Below, piece by piece: positions 23,939-47,817 of a DNA stretch of 64,000 nt (positions are counted from its first letter, which is position 1; each line of letters opens with the position of its first letter). This DNA is from Prasinococcaceae sp. CCMP 1430 (taxonomy: Eukaryota > Plantae > Prasinodermophyta), in assembly GCA_013416795.1 (NCBI GenBank), contig RQSC01001135.1, positions 27,312-91,311 on the forward strand. Reading direction: 5' to 3'. The translations under genes were made by a program, and so were the position numbers. The notes below the pieces were generated by a model. It had not been told where the DNA came from, ran no database searches, and saw only the letters and a program-made list of their open reading frames with translations.

Positions 23939-24735
23939 ATGGTGCGCTCGCGGCGCACTACGGCGCTCGCGCTCGCGCTCGCGCTCGTGGTAGGTGCGGC
24001 GGCGGCAGCGGTAGCAGCGGCGGCGGCGGCGGGGGGAGCGAAGGTGGCGGCCGTGAAGGGCGAGGCAGCATTCGATGCGCTTGGGGGCGGCGCGACGGCG
24101 CGGCCTGTTCTGCTGCAGCTGCGCTCGCCGCGGTGTGGCCTGTGCCGCAAGGTCGACGCGCTCTTCGCCGCGCTCGCCGAGGAGCATCCGCGCGTCGCCT
24201 TTGCGTCGATCGACGTCGCAGAGGAGCCCGAGGTCAGCGCGAGGCTCGGCGCGAAGTTCACACCCGCCATCTTCTACATCTCGCGCGGCCGCGCAGTGCA
24301 GTACGACCCGGCGTTCTCGCCCGAGCTCGAGTTCTCCGAGGAGGGATTGGGTGCGTTCCTCGCGGGGCCCGCTGACGAGATCGCACGCGCGGCAGGCAAG
24401 CCCTTCCCACCGCCGCAGCTTGCGCCCTTGGCTTCGGTGGCGACCGCCGCGTGGAGGAAGTTCGCTCCGGCGGCGTGGGCGGCATTCGACGCGGCGTCGC
24501 GTGCGCGCGCGGCCCTCGTCGCCATGGGCGTGCCGTCCCAGCTGGCATACGTCGCTGTGCCGCTGGCACTCACCGTGTGGGCCTTCGTGGCGGTGGTCGC
24601 CGCCGCGTGGGTTGCCAGCGCTCGGGCAGACGGGCGCGAGCCAAGCGCGGCTGAGGCGCGCAGGCGGCGGCGCGAGCGCGGAGGGCGCGCGTTGCCAGAC
24701 CCGGAGGAAGAGGAGGGGGGCGAGGAGGAGGAAGG
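23939..24735 (+). CDS. Secretory-pathway thioredoxin-fold membrane protein (TMX-like), 3' end missing
   Basis: Signal peptide, VLLQLRSPRCGLC, FASIDVAEEPEVSARLGAKFTPAIFYIS, TM segment LAYVAVPLALTVWAFVAVVAAAWVA. No stop before it runs into the ankyrin gene intron. Confidence 0.7.
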
Positions 24736-24878
24736 AGCGGCCGTGAGCGAGGTCGGCGCCGGGACGAGCGCAGCCACCGCTTCGTCGCAGCCACCGGTGC
24801 GCGCAACGGCCAGCGGCGAGGGGCCGCGCCGCAGAGGCGGCTGTGGCGGCGCTTTGCCCAGCGGCGGCATACGCACCA

Positions 24879-25528
24879 TGCCAAAGTCGTCCTTCCACTC
24901 GCAGTCGACGCGGGCTTTGTCTGCGGCGAGCATCGAAAGCAGCTCAGTGAGCCCGTTGTATGCGGTCCAGCTGAGCGCAGTGTCGTTTTCGCAGTCGGTG
25001 GCAGCCGGGTCGGCCCCGTGCTTGAGGAGGTAGGCTGCGCACGCGGCGTGGCCTGACTGTGCGGCAATCGTGAGCGGCGTGGCCGCCCGCGAGTCGCGCG
25101 CGTTGACGCTCGCGCCGCACCCGAGGAGTGCGTGCGCTGCGTCGACCCTGCCAGACGAGCACGCCCAGTGCAAGGGCTGCATGCCATGCTGGAACGTCGC
25201 CGCGTCGACGCACGCGCCCGCATCAATGAGCACGTGAATGACGCTCACGTGGCCATTCTTTGCAGCGAAGTGAAGCGCGGTCTGCCCCTCTGCATCGACG
25301 CGACGCACGAGTGCCGTCTGCGCCTCATGCGTACCCGCCTCGCGCAGCAGGTCGCGTAGCGTCGCCTCCTCACCATACCCCGCCGCGTTAACGAGCGCCG
25401 AGTGCCGCGCGCCTTCTGCGGCCGCGGCCGATGCCGCACTGTCGGTGATCGCATCGCCCACACCCGCGCCCGGTCCTTTGGGACGTGTTAGCTCGCCCCC
25501 CGGTGCATGATGTTGCTCATCCTCCTCT

Positions 25529-25563
<35 letters not shown>

Positions 25564-25629
25564 CTGCTGCTGCTGCCCCTTTTTCTTGCGCGGCGGGAGC
25601 GCGGGCAGCCCGCCGCCGCCGCCGTCCAT
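24879..25629 (-). CDS. Ankyrin-repeat protein, first exon (AKR1/ZDHHC17-like N-terminus possible), 3' exons missing
   Basis: GQTALHFAAKNGH, GMQPLHWACSSGR, AATPLTIAAQSGH, NDTALSWTAYNG; polyQ near the N-terminus; donor ATG|gtgcgt at 24878. Confidence 0.8.
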
Positions 25630-25667
25630 CGCCGCAGCGAGGGGGGCGGGGCGTGGGCGCGGGGGGN

Positions 25668-25819
25668 GAAAGCCCCGGGCGTGAGTGAGTAACTCGGGTC
25701 AGACAGCGGGATTGCACCGATAGCAAACCCGGCTGATAATTAAGGTCAGGGTCTGGGGTATTGAACCCCATCCCCGTCAGCTCTTAAGGGTAGGGTCTAA
25801 GGTATGGAACCCCAACACA
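25668..25819 (+). repeat. Left 152 bp direct repeat (LTR-like or split direct repeat)
   Basis: gaaagccccgggcgtgagtgag...ggtatggaaccccaacaca; has gtcagacaGcggg where the right copy has gtcagacaAcggg. Confidence 0.95.
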
Positions 25820-26004
25820 AACGACTCCTAAGGGTAGGGTCTAAGGTCCCGGACCTTAACCCGACTTAGGGGAAGGGTTCAGAGAATGGAACCCTGGGCA
25901 CCTTGTGACCAACCGCTGCGAATCCAGTGGAACCCACCCCTCCTCGTTCATTTTGACGTAGGGGAGTTCCGCGTGTGAGATATTTTTAGAAGGGCGGTAG
26001 GGTT

Positions 26005-26595
26005 GTGTGCCAGAGCGTGTGCAGCGTGTGCCCCCCGCGCCCTACGCAGGAGCACAACGCACGCCGGCCACAGAACAGAAAGCCGAAGATGAGTGGCGGC
26101 ATGACGATGATAGGAGGCAACCTCATCGACTGGTCTTCAAAACACCAGCCTTACGTCACCCTGCACAGCGGCGAAGCCGAGGTCGTGGCTGCATCGAACA
26201 ACGCGACTTCAATGAGATACTGGCAGCAGCTCACCGACGAGATGGGCATGAAGGCGACCAACTCCATGATACGAGTGGACGCCACTGTGGCCGAGAGATT
26301 CCTCAGCCAGCCGCTCCATACCAGCCAGATGCGGCACGTCAATACGAAATTGCTTTTCGTACGAGAACATGTCAAGGCACGCCTGTACGAGTTCGGACAC
26401 GTCGACGGCACGGTCAATCCGGCCGACGCGCTCACGAAATCGCAGGGCGGGAGCACCATCGAACACCTATATGGCGTGGTGCAGTCGTGCAACACGCACA
26501 GACAGAGCGGACGCAAGTCGACTGCAGACAGACACAGCAGAGACGACAAGCGTGGCCGAAAGGCCAAGAGAACCAGACACACAAGCATGAGATGA
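26005..26595 (+). pseudogene. Ty1/copia-type RNase H fragment
   Basis: KMSGGMTMIGGNLIDWSSKHQPYVTLHSGEAEVVAAS...MRHVNTKLLFVREHV...VDGTVNPADALTK follows the copia RNase H pattern (SG..F..GG..ISW.SKKQ..VALSS.EAEY; HI...HFVRE; N.AD.LTK). The first catalytic Asp motif and all of RT are missing. Confidence 0.85.
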
Positions 26596-26747
26596 GACAT
26601 GCAGCTGTGACCAATACAGACACAAGAGCATGAGACGAGACATGCAGATGTGACAGACCCAGACGCAAAGTGTGAGACGAGACACACACGCGATGCAGCA
26701 CGAGACGAGACGTGCAGAGAGATCCCTTAACCCCAACACAAACGACT

Positions 26748-26993
26748 GGCGTCTCGGCGCCTCCGGGTATGTCGTACCTGCCGCACAGCGGGAGGTCAAT
26801 GTTCGCGTCAGGCGCGTGGGCCGTCGCCAAGGACATGGTGCAAATATGTTTCATTGGCGGGTGGGCGCCGAACTCGGCTACGGTCGGCAAGCACTACATC
26901 GACCCCACGTACCCGTGCGACGAACACGCCTTGTTTTTCTTTGGCTGGCTTCGGGACAGCCCCACTCGGGGCACCCCGAATACCAGCGACTAG
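26748..26993 (+). pseudogene. Tyrosine recombinase C-terminal fragment (DIRS/PAT-like YR)
   Basis: GVSAPPGMSYLPHSGRSMFASGAWAV...ICFIGGWAPNSATVGKHYIDPT...ALFFFGWL gives H-x-x-R, (G)GW and catalytic Y with box II spacing. The first catalytic R/K region is missing. Confidence 0.75.
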
Positions 26994-27650
26994 AATGGCA
27001 TCAAGGCAGGGTACACTACAAGCGTGGTTGGGCATTTTGGCTACACCGAGTTTGTAGATTAGCACCCAGCTGCGCACGCCCCCATGCGTTTTGATAGGGA
27101 CGGTTCCCCCAGCGCGCGTGATCCGCGCGGGATCCGTTTTCGGGGGCGTGCCACTCTTGCTGCTTTGCGCGCTGCGCGCGCAACAGCAGCTCCGCGTGCT
27201 TAGGCACGCGAGAGTCACCCACGGTGAACACTCCCCTCTCGTGCGCGAGAGGGTTATCGTGTAAGACGGGGCACGCGTGAGCGCGTGCACTGTGCTACGG
27301 GGCGCGTTCGCGCGCTCTGAGTAGCAGCCTGCCCACATGTCTGACGCCGAGGACGGGGGGGCACCGTCCGCGGCTGAGGAATTCAGGGCACTGACCGCCG
27401 CAGACACGCTCATGGGCGCAACATGGCCGCGTTCGGACGACGAGTTGGAGACCGCGCGCGACCTGTTGTCCACCGTGGTTACGTGCATGTCCGGCAGTCG
27501 GGGCAGTTCGTGTGATGATATGTAGCTCGCATGCTACATAATGTATCGTCCTCACCTAGTCTCCCGTGGTCAGTCTAGACAGTCATTTACCTGATGACCT
27601 ACCCCAGGTCTGAGTGGAAACTACACTGGGTTGAAACCCCCAGCCGGGTT

Positions 27651-27802
27651 GAAAGCCCCGGGCGTGAGTGAGTAACTCGGGTCAGACAACGGGATTGCAC
27701 CGATAGCAAACCCGGCTGATAATTAAGGTCAGGGTCTGGGGTATTGAACCCCATCCCCGTCAGCTCTTAAGGGTAGGGTCTAAGGTATGGAACCCCAACA
27801 CA
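27651..27802 (+). repeat. Right 152 bp direct repeat, cut by the N at 27803
   Basis: 151 of 152 positions identical to 25668-25819. Confidence 0.95.
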
Positions 27803-27996
27803 NCAGCGGCGGCGGCCGCCGCCGGGCCCGCCCTCGTCGCGCGCGCGCGCGCGCGCGCGGGCGCACCAGAGAGAGAGGGAGAGAGACAGAGAGGAGGAGC
27901 GCGCTTCGTCCGCCGGGGAGGAGGGAGGGGGAAGTGAGCAGCGCGGCGCCGCGCGCGCTTGCGCGCTTGCGCTTGCGCGTGCACGCGCAGAGGCCC

Positions 27997-28770
27997 ATGT
28001 CGGCGATCTACGCGACCGAGCCCCCCCCGCGCGGGCGCGTGGTGCTCGCCACGAGCTTCGGCGAGCTGGACATCGAGCTCTTCAGCCGCGAGGCGCCGCG
28101 CGCGTGCCGCAACTTCGTGCAGCTGTGCCTGGACGGGTACTACGATGGCGTGGCCTTCCACCGGCTCCTGCCGGGGCTCATGCTGCAGGGCGGCGACCCG
28201 ACGGGCACCGGGGGCGGCGGCGACTCGGCGGTGGACGGCGGCGCGCCCTTCCCCAACGAGTGCCACTCGCGCCTCAAGTTCACCCGCCGCGGCCTCGTGG
28301 GCTGCGCGGGCGGCGCGGGCGCCGGCGGCGAACGCAACACCTCGCAGTTCTTCATGACGTACGCGCCCGCGCGCCACCTCGACGGCGCGCACACCATCTT
28401 CGGGCGGCTCGCGGGCGACACCGTCTTCAACCTCATGAGCACCGAAGAGGTCGCCGTGGACGAGCAGACCGACAGGCCGGAGGTCGCGCTCACGATCCTC
28501 GGCGCAACCGTGCCCGAGAATCCGTTCGAGGACGGCCGCGGGGCGATCACCGCGCAGCCCGGCCGCTGGCCGCACCAGGTGCGCGCCATTGAGGCGGAGC
28601 GCGCGCGGAAGGCGGAGGCCGTCAAGCCCAAGGCGCCGCGCAAGAAGCAGCTCAACCTGCTCAGCTTCGGCGACGACGCCGAGGAGGACGAGGAGGAGCT
28701 CGACGAGCTCGGCGGTGGGGGCGTCGCGTCGAGCCATGACGTGCTCGCCGACAGGCGGCTGCTCAAGGGC
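27997..28770 (+). CDS. CWC27: Spliceosomal cyclophilin-like protein CWC27, 3' end missing
   Basis: MSAIYATEPPPRGRVVLATSFGELDIELFSREAPRACRNFVQLCLDGYY...QGGDPTGTG...SQFF...HTIFGR and LLSFGDD...SSHD; collides with the GSIII fragment at about 28770. Confidence 0.9.
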
Positions 28771-29730
28771 GCCGCGAGGCCATACTGGGCGGCAGTCTCC
28801 TCGATGATCTGCATCACGACCAGGTTCTGGTCAGTCTGCACGCGGCAGTCGCCGAAGAGCGGCGCGAACTCGTACTGGTTGGGGGCGACCTCACGGTGGC
28901 GAGTCTTGAGGGGAATGCCAACCTTGTAGCACTCCTGCTGGATGGCCTGCATGCACTGCAGCACGGCCGTCGAGGACGTGAGCGGCGCCATGTAATGGTC
29001 GCACATCTCCTGGCCGCGCGCGGGCGTCTTGCCAATCAGCGTGCGGCCCACGAACTGCAGGTCGGGGCGCGTGTAGTAGGCGTCGCGCGGGACGAGGAAG
29101 ATCTCCTGCTCGAGGCCGATGTTCGCGATGATGCCCGAGCACTCCACGCCCATCGCCTTCAGCAGGCGCGCGCCCTCCGTGGAGAGCGCCTCGCAGCTGC
29201 GGTGCAGCGGCGTCTTCTCATCGAGCGCCTGGCCGGTGTACGCCATGAAGGCACTCGGGATGAACATGACATCCTCGCGGCAGAAGGGCGGCGAGAGGGG
29301 GTCGACCGCCAGGTAGCCACCGGCGGTGTGCGTCGCGCGCAGGCCGCCGTTCGGGTACGAGGAGCCATCGGTCTCGCCAGTCAGGAGGTCGCCCTGCGCG
29401 TGATGCACGCACGTGCGCGCGGAGTCAGCTCCGTGCCTCCGCGTCGGCGAGCGAGCGGGCGGGGCAGCGGGCGGGCGGGCCTCCGGGTGGAACGTGGCAG
29501 GCTCCAACGTGCGCGCAGGAAGCGCCCGCGATCGCGCGCGGGCAAGCACGCGCACGCACCGCGTCGAACTCCCAGGAGGGCGTGCCGTCCGCGGCGAAGT
29601 TGAGCATGGAGATCTGCACGCCCGCGGCGTTGCCGTGGCGCACGCCGGTGCTGCCGAGCGGCTGGAACCAGTGGCAGTACGACGTCGCGCCCCGGTCGAC
29701 GGCCCAGTCGCGCATCGCGGCGGCAACCAC
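28770..29730 (-). CDS. Glutamine synthetase type III, internal fragment
   Basis: WAVDRGATSYCHWFQPL, GETDGSSYPNGGLRATHTAGGY, LDEKTPL, GLEQEIFLV, GQEMCDHY, KTRHREVAPNQYEFAP. Stops at YGLAA, before the expected EKPF/NGSGKH motifs; 5' side bounded by the N at 29770. Confidence 0.9.
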
Positions 29731-36188: not shown

Positions 36189-36957
36189 NNNNNNNNNNNN
36201 NNNNNNNNNNNNNNNNNNNNNNNNNNNNNNNNNNNNNNNNNNNNNNNNNNNNNNNNNNNNNNNNNNNNNNNNNNNNNNNNNNNNNNNNNNNNNNNNNNNN
36301 NNNNNNNNNNNNNNNNNNNNNNNNNNNNNNNNNNNNNNNNNNNNNNNNNNNNNNNNNNNNNNNNNNNNNNNNNNNNNNNNNNNNNNNNNNNNNNNNNNNN
36401 NNNNNNNNNNNNNNNNNNNNNNNNNNNNNNNNNNNNNNNNNNNNNNNNNNNNNNNNNNNNNNNNNNNNNNNNNNNNNNNNNNNNNNNNNNNNNNNNNNNN
36501 NNNNNNNNNNNNNNNNNNNNNNNNNNNNNNNNNNNNNNNNNNNNNNNNNNNNNNNNNNNNNNNNNNNNNNNNNNNNNNNNNNNNNNNNNNNNNNNNNNNN
36601 NNNNNNNNNNNNNNNNNNNNNNNNNNNNNNNNNNNNNNNNNNNNNNNNNNNNNNNNNNNNNNNNNNNNNNNNNNNNNNNNNNNNNNNNNNNNNNNNNNNN
36701 NNNNNNNNNNNNNNNNNNNNNNNNNNNNNNNNNNNNNNNNNNNNNNNNNNNNNNNNNNNNNNNNNNNNNNNNNNNNNNNNNNNNNNNNNNNNNNNNNNNN
36801 NNNNNNNNNNNNNNNNNNNNNNNNNNNNNNNNNNNNNNNNNNNNNNNNNNNNNNNNNNNNNNNNNNNNNNNNNNNNNNNNNNNNNNNNNNNNNNNNNNNN
36901 NNNNNNNNNNNNNNNNNNNNNNNNNNNNNNNNNNNNNNNNNNNNNNNNNNNNNNNNN
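36189..36957. other. Assembly gap (769 N)
   Basis: Run of n. Confidence 1.
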
Positions 36958-46761: not shown

Positions 46762-47408
<647 letters not shown>

Positions 47409-47817
47409 NCGCCGCGCGGATCGAAGCCGGCGGCGGCGCCGGAAACGCGGAGCGGCCGCGCGGACGCGGGGCAAGGGCAGGACGAAAAGCACTCGGAACG
47501 CGCGGAAGAAGCGCAACCAAAGCGACGCACGGAATTCGCGCGCAGCGCACGCACCTCGACGCGCGGCCGCAGGGAACGGGCGCGCGGGCCGAGCGGGGTT
47601 CGCCGGGCAGGGTGGGGCGGGGCAGGGGGGGGGGAGGAAGGGCGAGGTGGGGCGTCCGTCCGAAGACGGTGAGTGGGGTGGGCGGGAGTGGAGGATCCGC
47701 CACCCCCCCACCCCCCTTCGGGGCGCCACACACCGCGCGCGCGCACTCGTGCCGCGCACCACCCCCAAAGGCCAGCGCTCCGCGCCCGCCGCAACCGCCG
47801 CCGCCGCCTCGCACGGC

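Follow-up and report, generated by a model that had tools for sequence, protein, structure and literature searches.

The 2.1-kb block at 25668-27802 of the window (the whole 64,000-nucleotide stretch of DNA that was analysed) is probably, with odds of roughly three in four, a rearranged non-autonomous relic composed of fragments from two retroelement families that are unrelated to each other. One would be an internally deleted Ty1/copia-derived LTR element, the likely source of a long repeat with its leader (X-R-Y), an RNase H tail and a set of 43-nt repeats. The other would be a DIRS-order (DIRS/PAT/Ngaro-like) element that may have supplied a tyrosine recombinase (YR) C-terminus, a 3′/5′ non-coding region that includes a conserved hairpin, the opening codons of an ORF and a mid-piece of the YR, in permuted order. 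For the order of events and the mechanism of recombination, we infer that the two families would have been joined by illegitimate recombination, either through double-strand-break repair or through template switching by a reverse transcriptase (RT), and that the joining event would have left a 19-nt filler copied from the LTR’s own subrepeat. Judged from its sequence, no part of the block is predicted to be capable of catalysing transposition. Pfam searches of eight block ORFs gave no meaningful match, with no RT, integrase or gag domain in any of them, and in an exact-sequence look-up eight ORFs were all absent from the protein collection.

The block was previously described as enclosed by 152-bp direct repeats. 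These are real in the assembly, where the left copy (R, 25668-25819) and the right copy (27651-27802), both on the + strand, are identical at 151 of 152 positions; the lone mismatch (25706 G, 27689 A) is without read support, G being present in three runs. Their length, however, is not natural, as they represent the portion shared by two copies of a longer LTR-like repeat that the assembly has truncated, and both abut Ns because the contig ends cut them. In the related contig L001, X-R-Y forms one contiguous repeat (417-953) with a second copy from 2541, the LTR-like repeats beginning at 417/421 and 2541/2545, and these copies flank an internal region that bears this RNase H tail but lacks a YR. 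The left R copy corresponds to L001 562-719 and lacks the first ~140 nt of the repeat (X) at the contig end; its start at 25668 equals 27651, a site inside an unbranched unitig in three runs. The right copy is cut at the contig end, where the unitig of 27510-27802 extends 5 nt beyond 27802 and is free of branches at 27802 (three runs). Nor is the right end of R a natural boundary, because four ~44-nt subrepeats (25739-25894, + strand, repeat family D2) continue as an array across 25819/25820. Y, the continuation or leader of the LTR-like repeat (25820-26044, + strand), shares 81% identity with L001 as far as position 953; its unitig (25795-26044) stands at 2-4x, and after 26044 other copies such as L001 diverge. 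X (27511-27650, + strand) is the 5′ start of the repeat, begins TGTGATGAT and corresponds to the place where the L001 repeat starts.

Of the features expected of paired LTRs (TG...CA ends, PBS, PPT and a 5-bp target duplication), a TG start and a tract resembling a polypurine tract are seen in relatives, the target site lying behind the Ns. A purine-rich tract precedes the second L001 repeat copy, and a tract identical to L001 2516-2545 lies directly upstream of X in other genomic copies. Upstream of the right LTR copy in the block, a YR fragment stands in place of this canonical tract. A tRNA scan of the 64-kb window found no tRNA genes for a primer-binding-site match, and no further copies of the block sequence were found within the window.

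The copia-pattern RNase H fragment reported earlier is borne out by an ORF at 26005/26086-26595, with its stop codon at 26593-26595. The fragment (26086-26499, + strand) is C-terminal and without the first catalytic Asp. Its putative copia assignment comes from language-model neighbours and motif pattern and not from a profile E-value: neighbours at 0.96 include a cluster named ‘Ty1/copia-type RT (fragment)’, the closest cluster with a Pfam assignment, at 0.82, is RVT_2, and the motif pattern presumably fits a Ty1-type RNase H. Pfam gave no match to the fragment and has no model for that region, a PDB sequence search returned nothing, and an AlphaFold2 model made without an alignment was unusable (pLDDT 34). 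The fragment has no similarity to a DIRS-type RT/RH ORF. No Pfam match to an RVT_2 reverse transcriptase was obtained in the block ORFs or in the internal ORF of L001, and a DDE integrase (rve) upstream of the RT is absent from the block. P0001 and P0002 are 94% and 85% identical to the window over 26218-26592. A word-indexed protein search with the fragment gave only two close fragments, so that a full-length autonomous parent of the copia-derived family was not found; scans of JGI metagenomes with a protein pattern and with a conserved 38-mer of the RNase H tail recovered no relatives. The N-terminal part of the fragment falls within a locus-specific single-copy stretch (26045-26383, + strand) that has deletions relative to L001, in which 172 nt plus ~530 nt more are present at this place. 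The repeat linker noted earlier is a 43-nt tandem repeat (26569-26684, 2.7 copies) 3′ of the RNase H stop. The region that holds it (26569-26728, + strand) is the 3′ untranslated part of the copia-derived family, and it is common to L001, L002 and L003 up to 26726/26727. L003 carries only 26224-26727, set in GC-rich DNA.

Between the RNase H and YR parts lies a 19-nt filler (26729-26747, + strand, repeat family D8) that is identical to 25808-25826, a stretch of the LTR subrepeat. The homology shared with L001-L003 stops at 26727 and that with L004/L005 sets in at 26747, about 20 nt further on, and the reading frames of the two pieces differ. The motif of this LTR subrepeat also serves a second joint, 25824->26384, in 2-3 other copies. 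In related contigs the two pieces occur apart: L001-L003 carry the RNase H tail without a YR, whereas L004-L006 carry the YR piece without an RNase H. The preliminary description had offered two origins for the block, and this separation in related contigs supports the one that saw a recombinant or nested relic of two families and tells against the other, a derivative of an undescribed retrotransposon combining a copia RT with a YR.

The YR C-terminus, reported earlier at 26748-26993, found ample company in a phmmer search, with 208 matches (best fragment match 1.5e-36; full-length YRs to 3e-13). This fragment (+ strand) lacks ~270 upstream residues, and its HxxR, GGW and catalytic Tyr align. 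It is 79% identical at the nucleotide level to L004/L005, whose match is confined to 26747-27182 and which lack an RNase H upstream; the YR of L006 is longer. A PDB sequence search with the YR fragment returned nothing. The frames of both fragments are open, with dN/dS of 0.21 for the YR fragment against L004 and 0.36 for the RNase H fragment against its relatives. Open frames and dN/dS below 1 were counted against a relic; they are also expected from divergence within active parents.

Downstream, the 3′ non-coding region of the YR element (26994-27153, + strand) matches L004 to 27069, and its motif at 26997-27021 is repeated in L004. A higher-copy sub-piece begins at ~27023, with loose ends in other copies before 27023/27026 and a back-joint 27083->26997. 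The hairpin-dense region of the earlier account folds more stably than shuffled sequence (27090-27335, z = -6.0). It includes a conserved GC-rich hairpin of the YR-element family (27139-27188, + strand; inverted repeat 27158-27172/27174-27188) that is 93-94% identical to L004 639-682 and L006 1611-1646. The next segment (27154-27390, + strand) is the probable 5′ region of the YR element with the first 18 codons of an ORF; a seawater metatranscriptome contig (X19) spans it and then continues into other sequence, and a loose end lies behind 27390. The short ORF that had also been noted is confirmed (27337-27525, 62 aa), and its C-terminal 40 codons (27391-27510, + strand) are a YR mid-fragment that aligns to residues 41-83 of L006 (47% identity, E = 2e-10), with the catalytic Arg of box I placed by alignment A2. 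This mid-fragment follows the YR C-terminus in the block, so that the order of the YR pieces is permuted. An intact YR (R-K-H-R-H/W-Y plus SAM-like domain) is absent, the N-terminus and the intervening region being missing. As for DIRS termini, the hairpin and a 3′-to-5′ junction region are present in the block and split-type repeats in L006; no complete terminal structure (ITR plus ICR, or split direct repeats) was found in the block.

Copy number was judged indirectly, from the depth of Logan unitigs by segment. The unitig of 26015-26413 has the depth of the host flanks (1x, three runs), 26384-26729 stands at ~4x, the YR piece at 2-5x and 27510-27802 at 5-7x, and unitigs branch at 26044, 26729, 27023, 27184 and 27510. 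Three independent runs have unitigs across every internal junction of the block, and its internal order is therefore real. In run X1 the junction-spanning unitig of 26700-27184 has ~2.2x single-copy depth, and therefore the composite may exist in at least two genomic copies; in run X3 a contig of 26384-26845 is unbroken across the RNase H/YR junction. The ~2.2x depth is not what a purely local accident of origin predicts. A multi-copy tandem array was set aside on the single-copy depth of 26015-26413, and a contaminant or episome on depth in stoichiometric proportion to the host flanks (three runs).

As had been stated, both edges of the block abut Ns; single Ns at 25667 and 27803 are contig joins that mark the left and right edges of this 2135-nt contig. 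Six single Ns occur in the window, all six adjoining GC-extreme or homopolymer DNA, and such contig breaks are a common feature of it. The assembly places the block between two host genes (ankyrin and cyclophilin). In three runs no contig links the block to either flank, and each end of the block falls within a unitig that has no branch; the true ends, any target duplication and the tie to the flanking genes are concealed at the Ns.

Three other explanations were weighed against the two-family relic. It is unlikely that the block represents a real chimeric non-autonomous family, in which an LTR vehicle of copia origin would have taken up DIRS-type terminal sequences and then been copied as a composite, whether mobilised in trans by copia or YR machinery or spread by segmental or tandem duplication. 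The elevated junction depth in X1, the unbroken contig in X3 and the recurrence of the second joint with the same subrepeat motif would all fit such a family, as would a block that is almost constant across 18 runs, three organism labels and 14 studies. Against it stand the YR fragment that takes the place of a purine-rich tract ahead of the right LTR copy, the single-copy state of the locus-specific part, the incomplete and permuted YR pieces, and the fact that the two fragments are never linked in relatives from other organisms. Less likely still is the more specific proposal of a young non-autonomous chimera: the RNase H-filler-YR composite would have arisen through template switching, or through a circular DIRS-type intermediate integrating at the LTR 19-mer (25808, 26729; also the 25824->26384 joint), and would have undergone one or more rounds of copying since. 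Highly improbable is a deletion derivative of an autonomous lineage, undescribed so far, that paired a copia-type RT/RNase H with a tyrosine recombinase. The one-strand order from RNase H to YR does mimic the pol-YR order of Ngaro/PAT, and the papers searched described no such lineage. Against it, the frames differ and 43-nt repeats and LTR-derived filler intervene, the RNase H tail has its own stop and 3′ region as in the YR-less L001-L003, and another YR piece follows further on, out of order. All four full-length YR relatives examined (P0154, P0167, P0006 and P0112) adjoin or are fused with an RVT_1-type RT and RT_RNaseH, in units of 4.3-5 kb of DIRS/PAT/Ngaro layout with or without a Dam-like methyltransferase, and in none does a copia RT (RVT_2) stand beside the YR. 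RVT_1/RT_RNaseH lies beside the YR in L007-L014 and in P0112 and is absent from the block.

An assembly artefact of placement and structure is, for its part, distinctly doubtful. Overlapping unitigs close a 1983-nt cycle, and the 2135-nt contig could be one turn plus overlap of this repeat-graph cycle, derived from a tandem cluster, an LTR-internal-LTR element with collapsed LTRs or a circular molecule, and slotted between genes without true junctions. Block ends within an unbranched unitig, the missing link to either flank, the frequency of single-N breaks in the window and the same identical-ends signature in the DIRS-like metagenome contigs L007 and L009 speak for it. Against it are the unitigs that span all internal junctions and the host-like depth of the single-copy segments, which speaks against a tandem array in many copies or an episome at high copy number. 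It concerns placement and completeness, and is compatible with the two-family relic.

Among known systems, nested or recombined transposon clusters with junction filler fit the block best; they share its many breakpoints in 2 kb, alternative continuations in other copies, short filler from nearby sequence and differing segment copy numbers, and nothing notable sets the block apart. Like internally deleted Ty1/copia elements, the block family has TG-starting LTR-like direct repeats, a purine-rich tract before canonical copies, only the extreme 3′ end of pol (an RNase H tail with an AD..TK-type C-terminal motif) with 3′ untranslated repeats, and low copy number with several deletion variants. 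Unlike in Ty1/copia, RVT_2, rve and gag are absent from the block and the relatives recovered, and DIRS-type sequence replaces the canonical 3′ internal end in the block. The RT/RH of DIRS-order elements is related to Ty3/gypsy (PMC3266345). The YR fragment resembles DIRS1/PAT/Ngaro-like elements in its 43-56% identity to the C-termini of YRs of 330-400 aa, whose full-length forms have SAM-like and catalytic domains in gag - RVT_1/RT_RNaseH (- Dam-like MT) - YR units; the direct repeats of L006 include a partial YR copy, and contigs of relatives (L007, L009) have a circular or tandem signature. In contrast to DIRS-order elements, the block keeps only ~80 C-terminal and ~40 mid YR residues, permuted, and is without DIRS-type RT/RH, gag, a recognisable ITR/ICR and complete split repeats.

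The block is thus best read as commonplace debris of transposons, with no new hybrid element in it. A copia-RT plus YR hybrid, if true, would have been a new class of retrotransposon, a reading that fails, and a young chimera, if true, would show, in nature, the termini of one retroelement family borne by a second one. As to assembly quality, contig joins at this locus conceal the element ends and possibly several kb, and, as a caution for the same assembly, direct repeats abutting single Ns should be taken for longer repeats whose copies have been cut short. For annotation, the organism has relics, low in copy number, of both an LTR family derived from copia and a DIRS-order family, and marine metagenome contigs include close relatives of each.

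The block at 25668-27802, with a single N on either side (25667 and 27803), is supported as a relic of two retroelement families. The assembly places it between two host genes of divergent orientation: on the minus strand a gene for an ankyrin-repeat protein (start codon at 25629), and on the plus strand one for a cyclophilin-type isomerase (from 27997). At 59%, the block's GC content is below that of the window (~70%) and of the immediate flanks (71-75%). The features listed in the preliminary description are present. These are direct repeats of 152 nt (25668-25819 and 27651-27802; 151/152 identical) that abut the Ns, a copia-like RNase H tail in an open frame (26086-26595), a linker of 43-nt tandem repeats (26569-26684), the C-terminus of a tyrosine recombinase (YR; 26748-26993), short GC-rich hairpins (z = -6.0 vs shuffles) and an ORF of 62 aa (27337-27525).

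The RNase H fragment lacks the region of the first catalytic Asp and has no reverse transcriptase (RT) upstream. Pfam has no model for this region, and the provisional assignment to the copia type rests on language-model neighbours, on a motif pattern and on dissimilarity to the DIRS-type RT/RNase H. The neighbours (score 0.96, 200/256 features in common) include a cluster named Ty1/copia-type RT fragment, and the nearest cluster having a Pfam family carries RVT_2. The C-terminal motifs (E in ..EAE.., D in ..VDA.. and AD..TK) match the copia-type RNase H pattern, and the fragment shows no similarity to the ORF with RVT_1/RT_RNaseH from a DIRS-type element (best E = 0.58).

With the RNase H ORF as query, a word-indexed search of proteins returned two close fragments, whose contigs were compared with the window. 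In L001, a 2727-nt Tara metagenome scaffold carrying a relative of the RNase H fragment, three sequences that are split in the window (27510-27650, the 152-nt repeat and 25820-26044) form one contiguous piece (417-953; identity 81-93%). A second copy of the first two runs from 2541 to the scaffold end and is 96% identical to the first. The internal region between the copies contains the RNase H tail and the 43-nt repeats (window 26216-26726, 90%), and YR sequence is absent from it. The 152-nt repeat belongs to a larger LTR-like unit that starts with TGTGATGAT and comes from a copia-derived family. A purine-rich tract precedes the second copy in L001, and a loose end before 27510 in X1, one of three DNA runs compared with the locus, carries the same 30 nt as are found upstream of that copy, which indicates that canonical copies of the copia-derived family also occur in the window's organism. 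The related contig L003 (94% identical) carries 26224-26727 only, with GC-rich DNA on both sides. A TGGCAGGAGCAC-type motif in L001 (1122-1139; window 26045-26060) could be a primer-binding site, the window copy lacking the TG owing to a 172-nt deletion.

The YR pieces have a different set of relatives. The 93-aa YR ORF, searched exhaustively with phmmer, has 208 matches; the full-length ones are 330-400 aa, align with the query at their C-terminus and possess SAM-like and Phage_integrase domains. Four relatives were studied in genomic context: P0154 (L007-L010; a 4745-nt unit) and P0167 (L011-L013; contigs of 4.3-4.9 kb), each with a gag-like ORF, RVT_1 + RT_RNaseH and YR; P0006 (L014; a 2891-nt contig), with RVT_1, RT_RNaseH, a Dam-like methyltransferase and YR; and P0112, a single protein of 805 aa that combines RVT_1, RT_RNaseH and YR. 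RVT_2 was found beside YR in 0/4. These layouts are those of DIRS, PAT and Ngaro elements, whose RT/RNase H is related to Ty3/gypsy (PMC3266345), and the YR pieces belong to a DIRS-order family. Among the closest DNA relatives, L004-L006, the similarity of L004/L005 (79% nt) to the window is restricted to 26747-27182, and upstream these contigs continue into further YR-like coding sequence with no RNase H.

On a metagenome scaffold, the ORF upstream of YR P0006 (L014 2-1498) unites RVT_1 and RT_RNaseH with a weak match to a Dam-like methyltransferase, which is the DIRS1/PAT-type layout. The marine metagenome contigs L007 (1-5066) and L009 (1-4872) contain a complete gag - RVT_1/RT_RNaseH - YR element and have identical ends 4745 nt apart, a signature of circular or tandem assembly; compared with L007, both L009 and L010 are permuted.

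Within the block the YR material starts with the C-terminus, continues through the 3′ region, the conserved hairpin and a 5′ region that holds an ORF start, and finishes with a YR mid-piece, an arrangement that is permuted and internally deleted. The 62-aa ORF does not stand as a separate gene: residues 21-62 match the part of YR that surrounds the first catalytic Arg (E = 2e-10), and its first 18 codons, together with 27154-27336, have a different continuation in a seawater metatranscriptome contig. In L006 the YR is longer (28% identity to the related protein P0005 over 227 aa), and a 537-nt direct repeat (374-910 and 1018-1554; 99.8%) takes in its C-terminal half and looks like a split-direct-repeat terminus with a partial recombinase copy. 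Terminal repeats of the YR family may thus regularly include isolated YR C-termini.

Homology of the copia-derived relatives to the window ends at 26726/26727 and that of the YR relatives begins at 26747; the 19 nt in between equal 25808-25826, part of a 44-nt subrepeat of the LTR-like unit. Graph branches are located at 26044, 26729, 27023, 27184 and 27510 in the three runs, and the metatranscriptome contig diverges past 27390. A joint 25824->26384, carried by about 2-3 other copies, is another deletion variant ending in the same LTR subrepeat motif. With unitig 26015-26413 taken as single copy (depth 7.2 in X1, 450 in X2 and ~134 in X3, close to the host flanks in each), copy numbers are 2-4x for 25795-26044, ~4x for 26384-26729, 2-5x for the YR piece, 1-3x for 27155-27539 and 5-7x for 27510-27802, so the block is a mosaic whose segments differ in history. 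Running against the mosaic reading, the X1 unitig across the RNase H/YR junction is at ~2.2x depth, so the junction may be present twice in that genome. A possible rival reading, weakly supported, is a mobile family of chimeric non-autonomous elements.

Assembly cuts, and not element termini, delimit the block. Each of the six single Ns in the window sits beside GC-extreme or homopolymer DNA and hence marks a contig join; together with a 769-N gap (36189-36957, between GC-rich and (GC)n sequence) the six indicate, within 64 kb, a scaffold fragmented at GC-extreme DNA. A run of 646 consecutive C (46763-47408) directly before the N at 47409 is almost certainly due to an artefact of assembly or gap filling or to an extreme homopolymer. 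Contigs of all runs break at the CTG/CAG repeat (25508-25594), which codes for poly-Q close to the N-terminus in the ankyrin-repeat gene (minus strand). Logan contigs from the three runs (three organism labels) were compared with 24700-28800. Overlapping unitigs 25795-26044, 26015-26413, 26384-26729, 26700-27184 (X1), 27155-27539 and 27510-27802 close a 1983-nt cycle, the last extending 5 nt further and overlapping the first. A junction with host DNA at the Ns should produce a branch at each, and none is present at 27802 or the equivalent of 25668 in the contigs of the three runs. The 152-nt repeat touches both Ns because the left copy is cut at its 5′ side and the right copy of the same repeat at its 3′ side, and what two such copies share always reaches both cuts. 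The sole mismatch between the copies (27689 A) occurs in 0/3 runs; all contigs of these independent runs contradict the window at 25971 (G>C), 26443-26444 (CA>TT) and 27689 (A>G), which likely reflects consensus errors in DNA derived from repeats or variation among repeat copies.

A misplaced or incomplete contig is a real concern, separate from the question of identity: the link between block and flanks is assembly placement only, and no contig joins the block to either flank in the three runs (weak evidence, the adjacent low-complexity DNA lying outside the comparison), but the internal order of the block is read-supported. The block is near-complete (0.92-0.94 of sampled words) in 18 runs from 14 studies under three organism labels and so is a stable part of the organism's genome. 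Two seawater metatranscriptome runs contain small parts of related elements, which does not show that the window's copy is transcribed.

The preliminary description had proposed either a derivative of a copia-RT plus YR retrotransposon or a recombinant or nested relic of two families. The former is contradicted, and the novel hybrid rejected, in that the RNase H and YR fragments occur separately in relatives and the RT type adjoining YR in the four relatives studied is not RVT_2. The relic is favoured by mosaic segments, separate relatives and filler at the junction. In the most likely history, nested insertion would have brought together two elements, one copia-derived and internally deleted, the other DIRS-type and also deleted, and illegitimate recombination, through either break repair or template switching, would then have left the filler; later deletions and exchange among few copies would have given rise to the variants in the graph. 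We infer both the order of events and the recombination route. No piece of the block keeps a full catalytic set. Open frames and dN/dS values below 1 (0.36 for the RNase H tail vs L001, 0.21 for the YR C-terminus vs L004), though no proof of present function, would fit divergence while the parent elements were still active.
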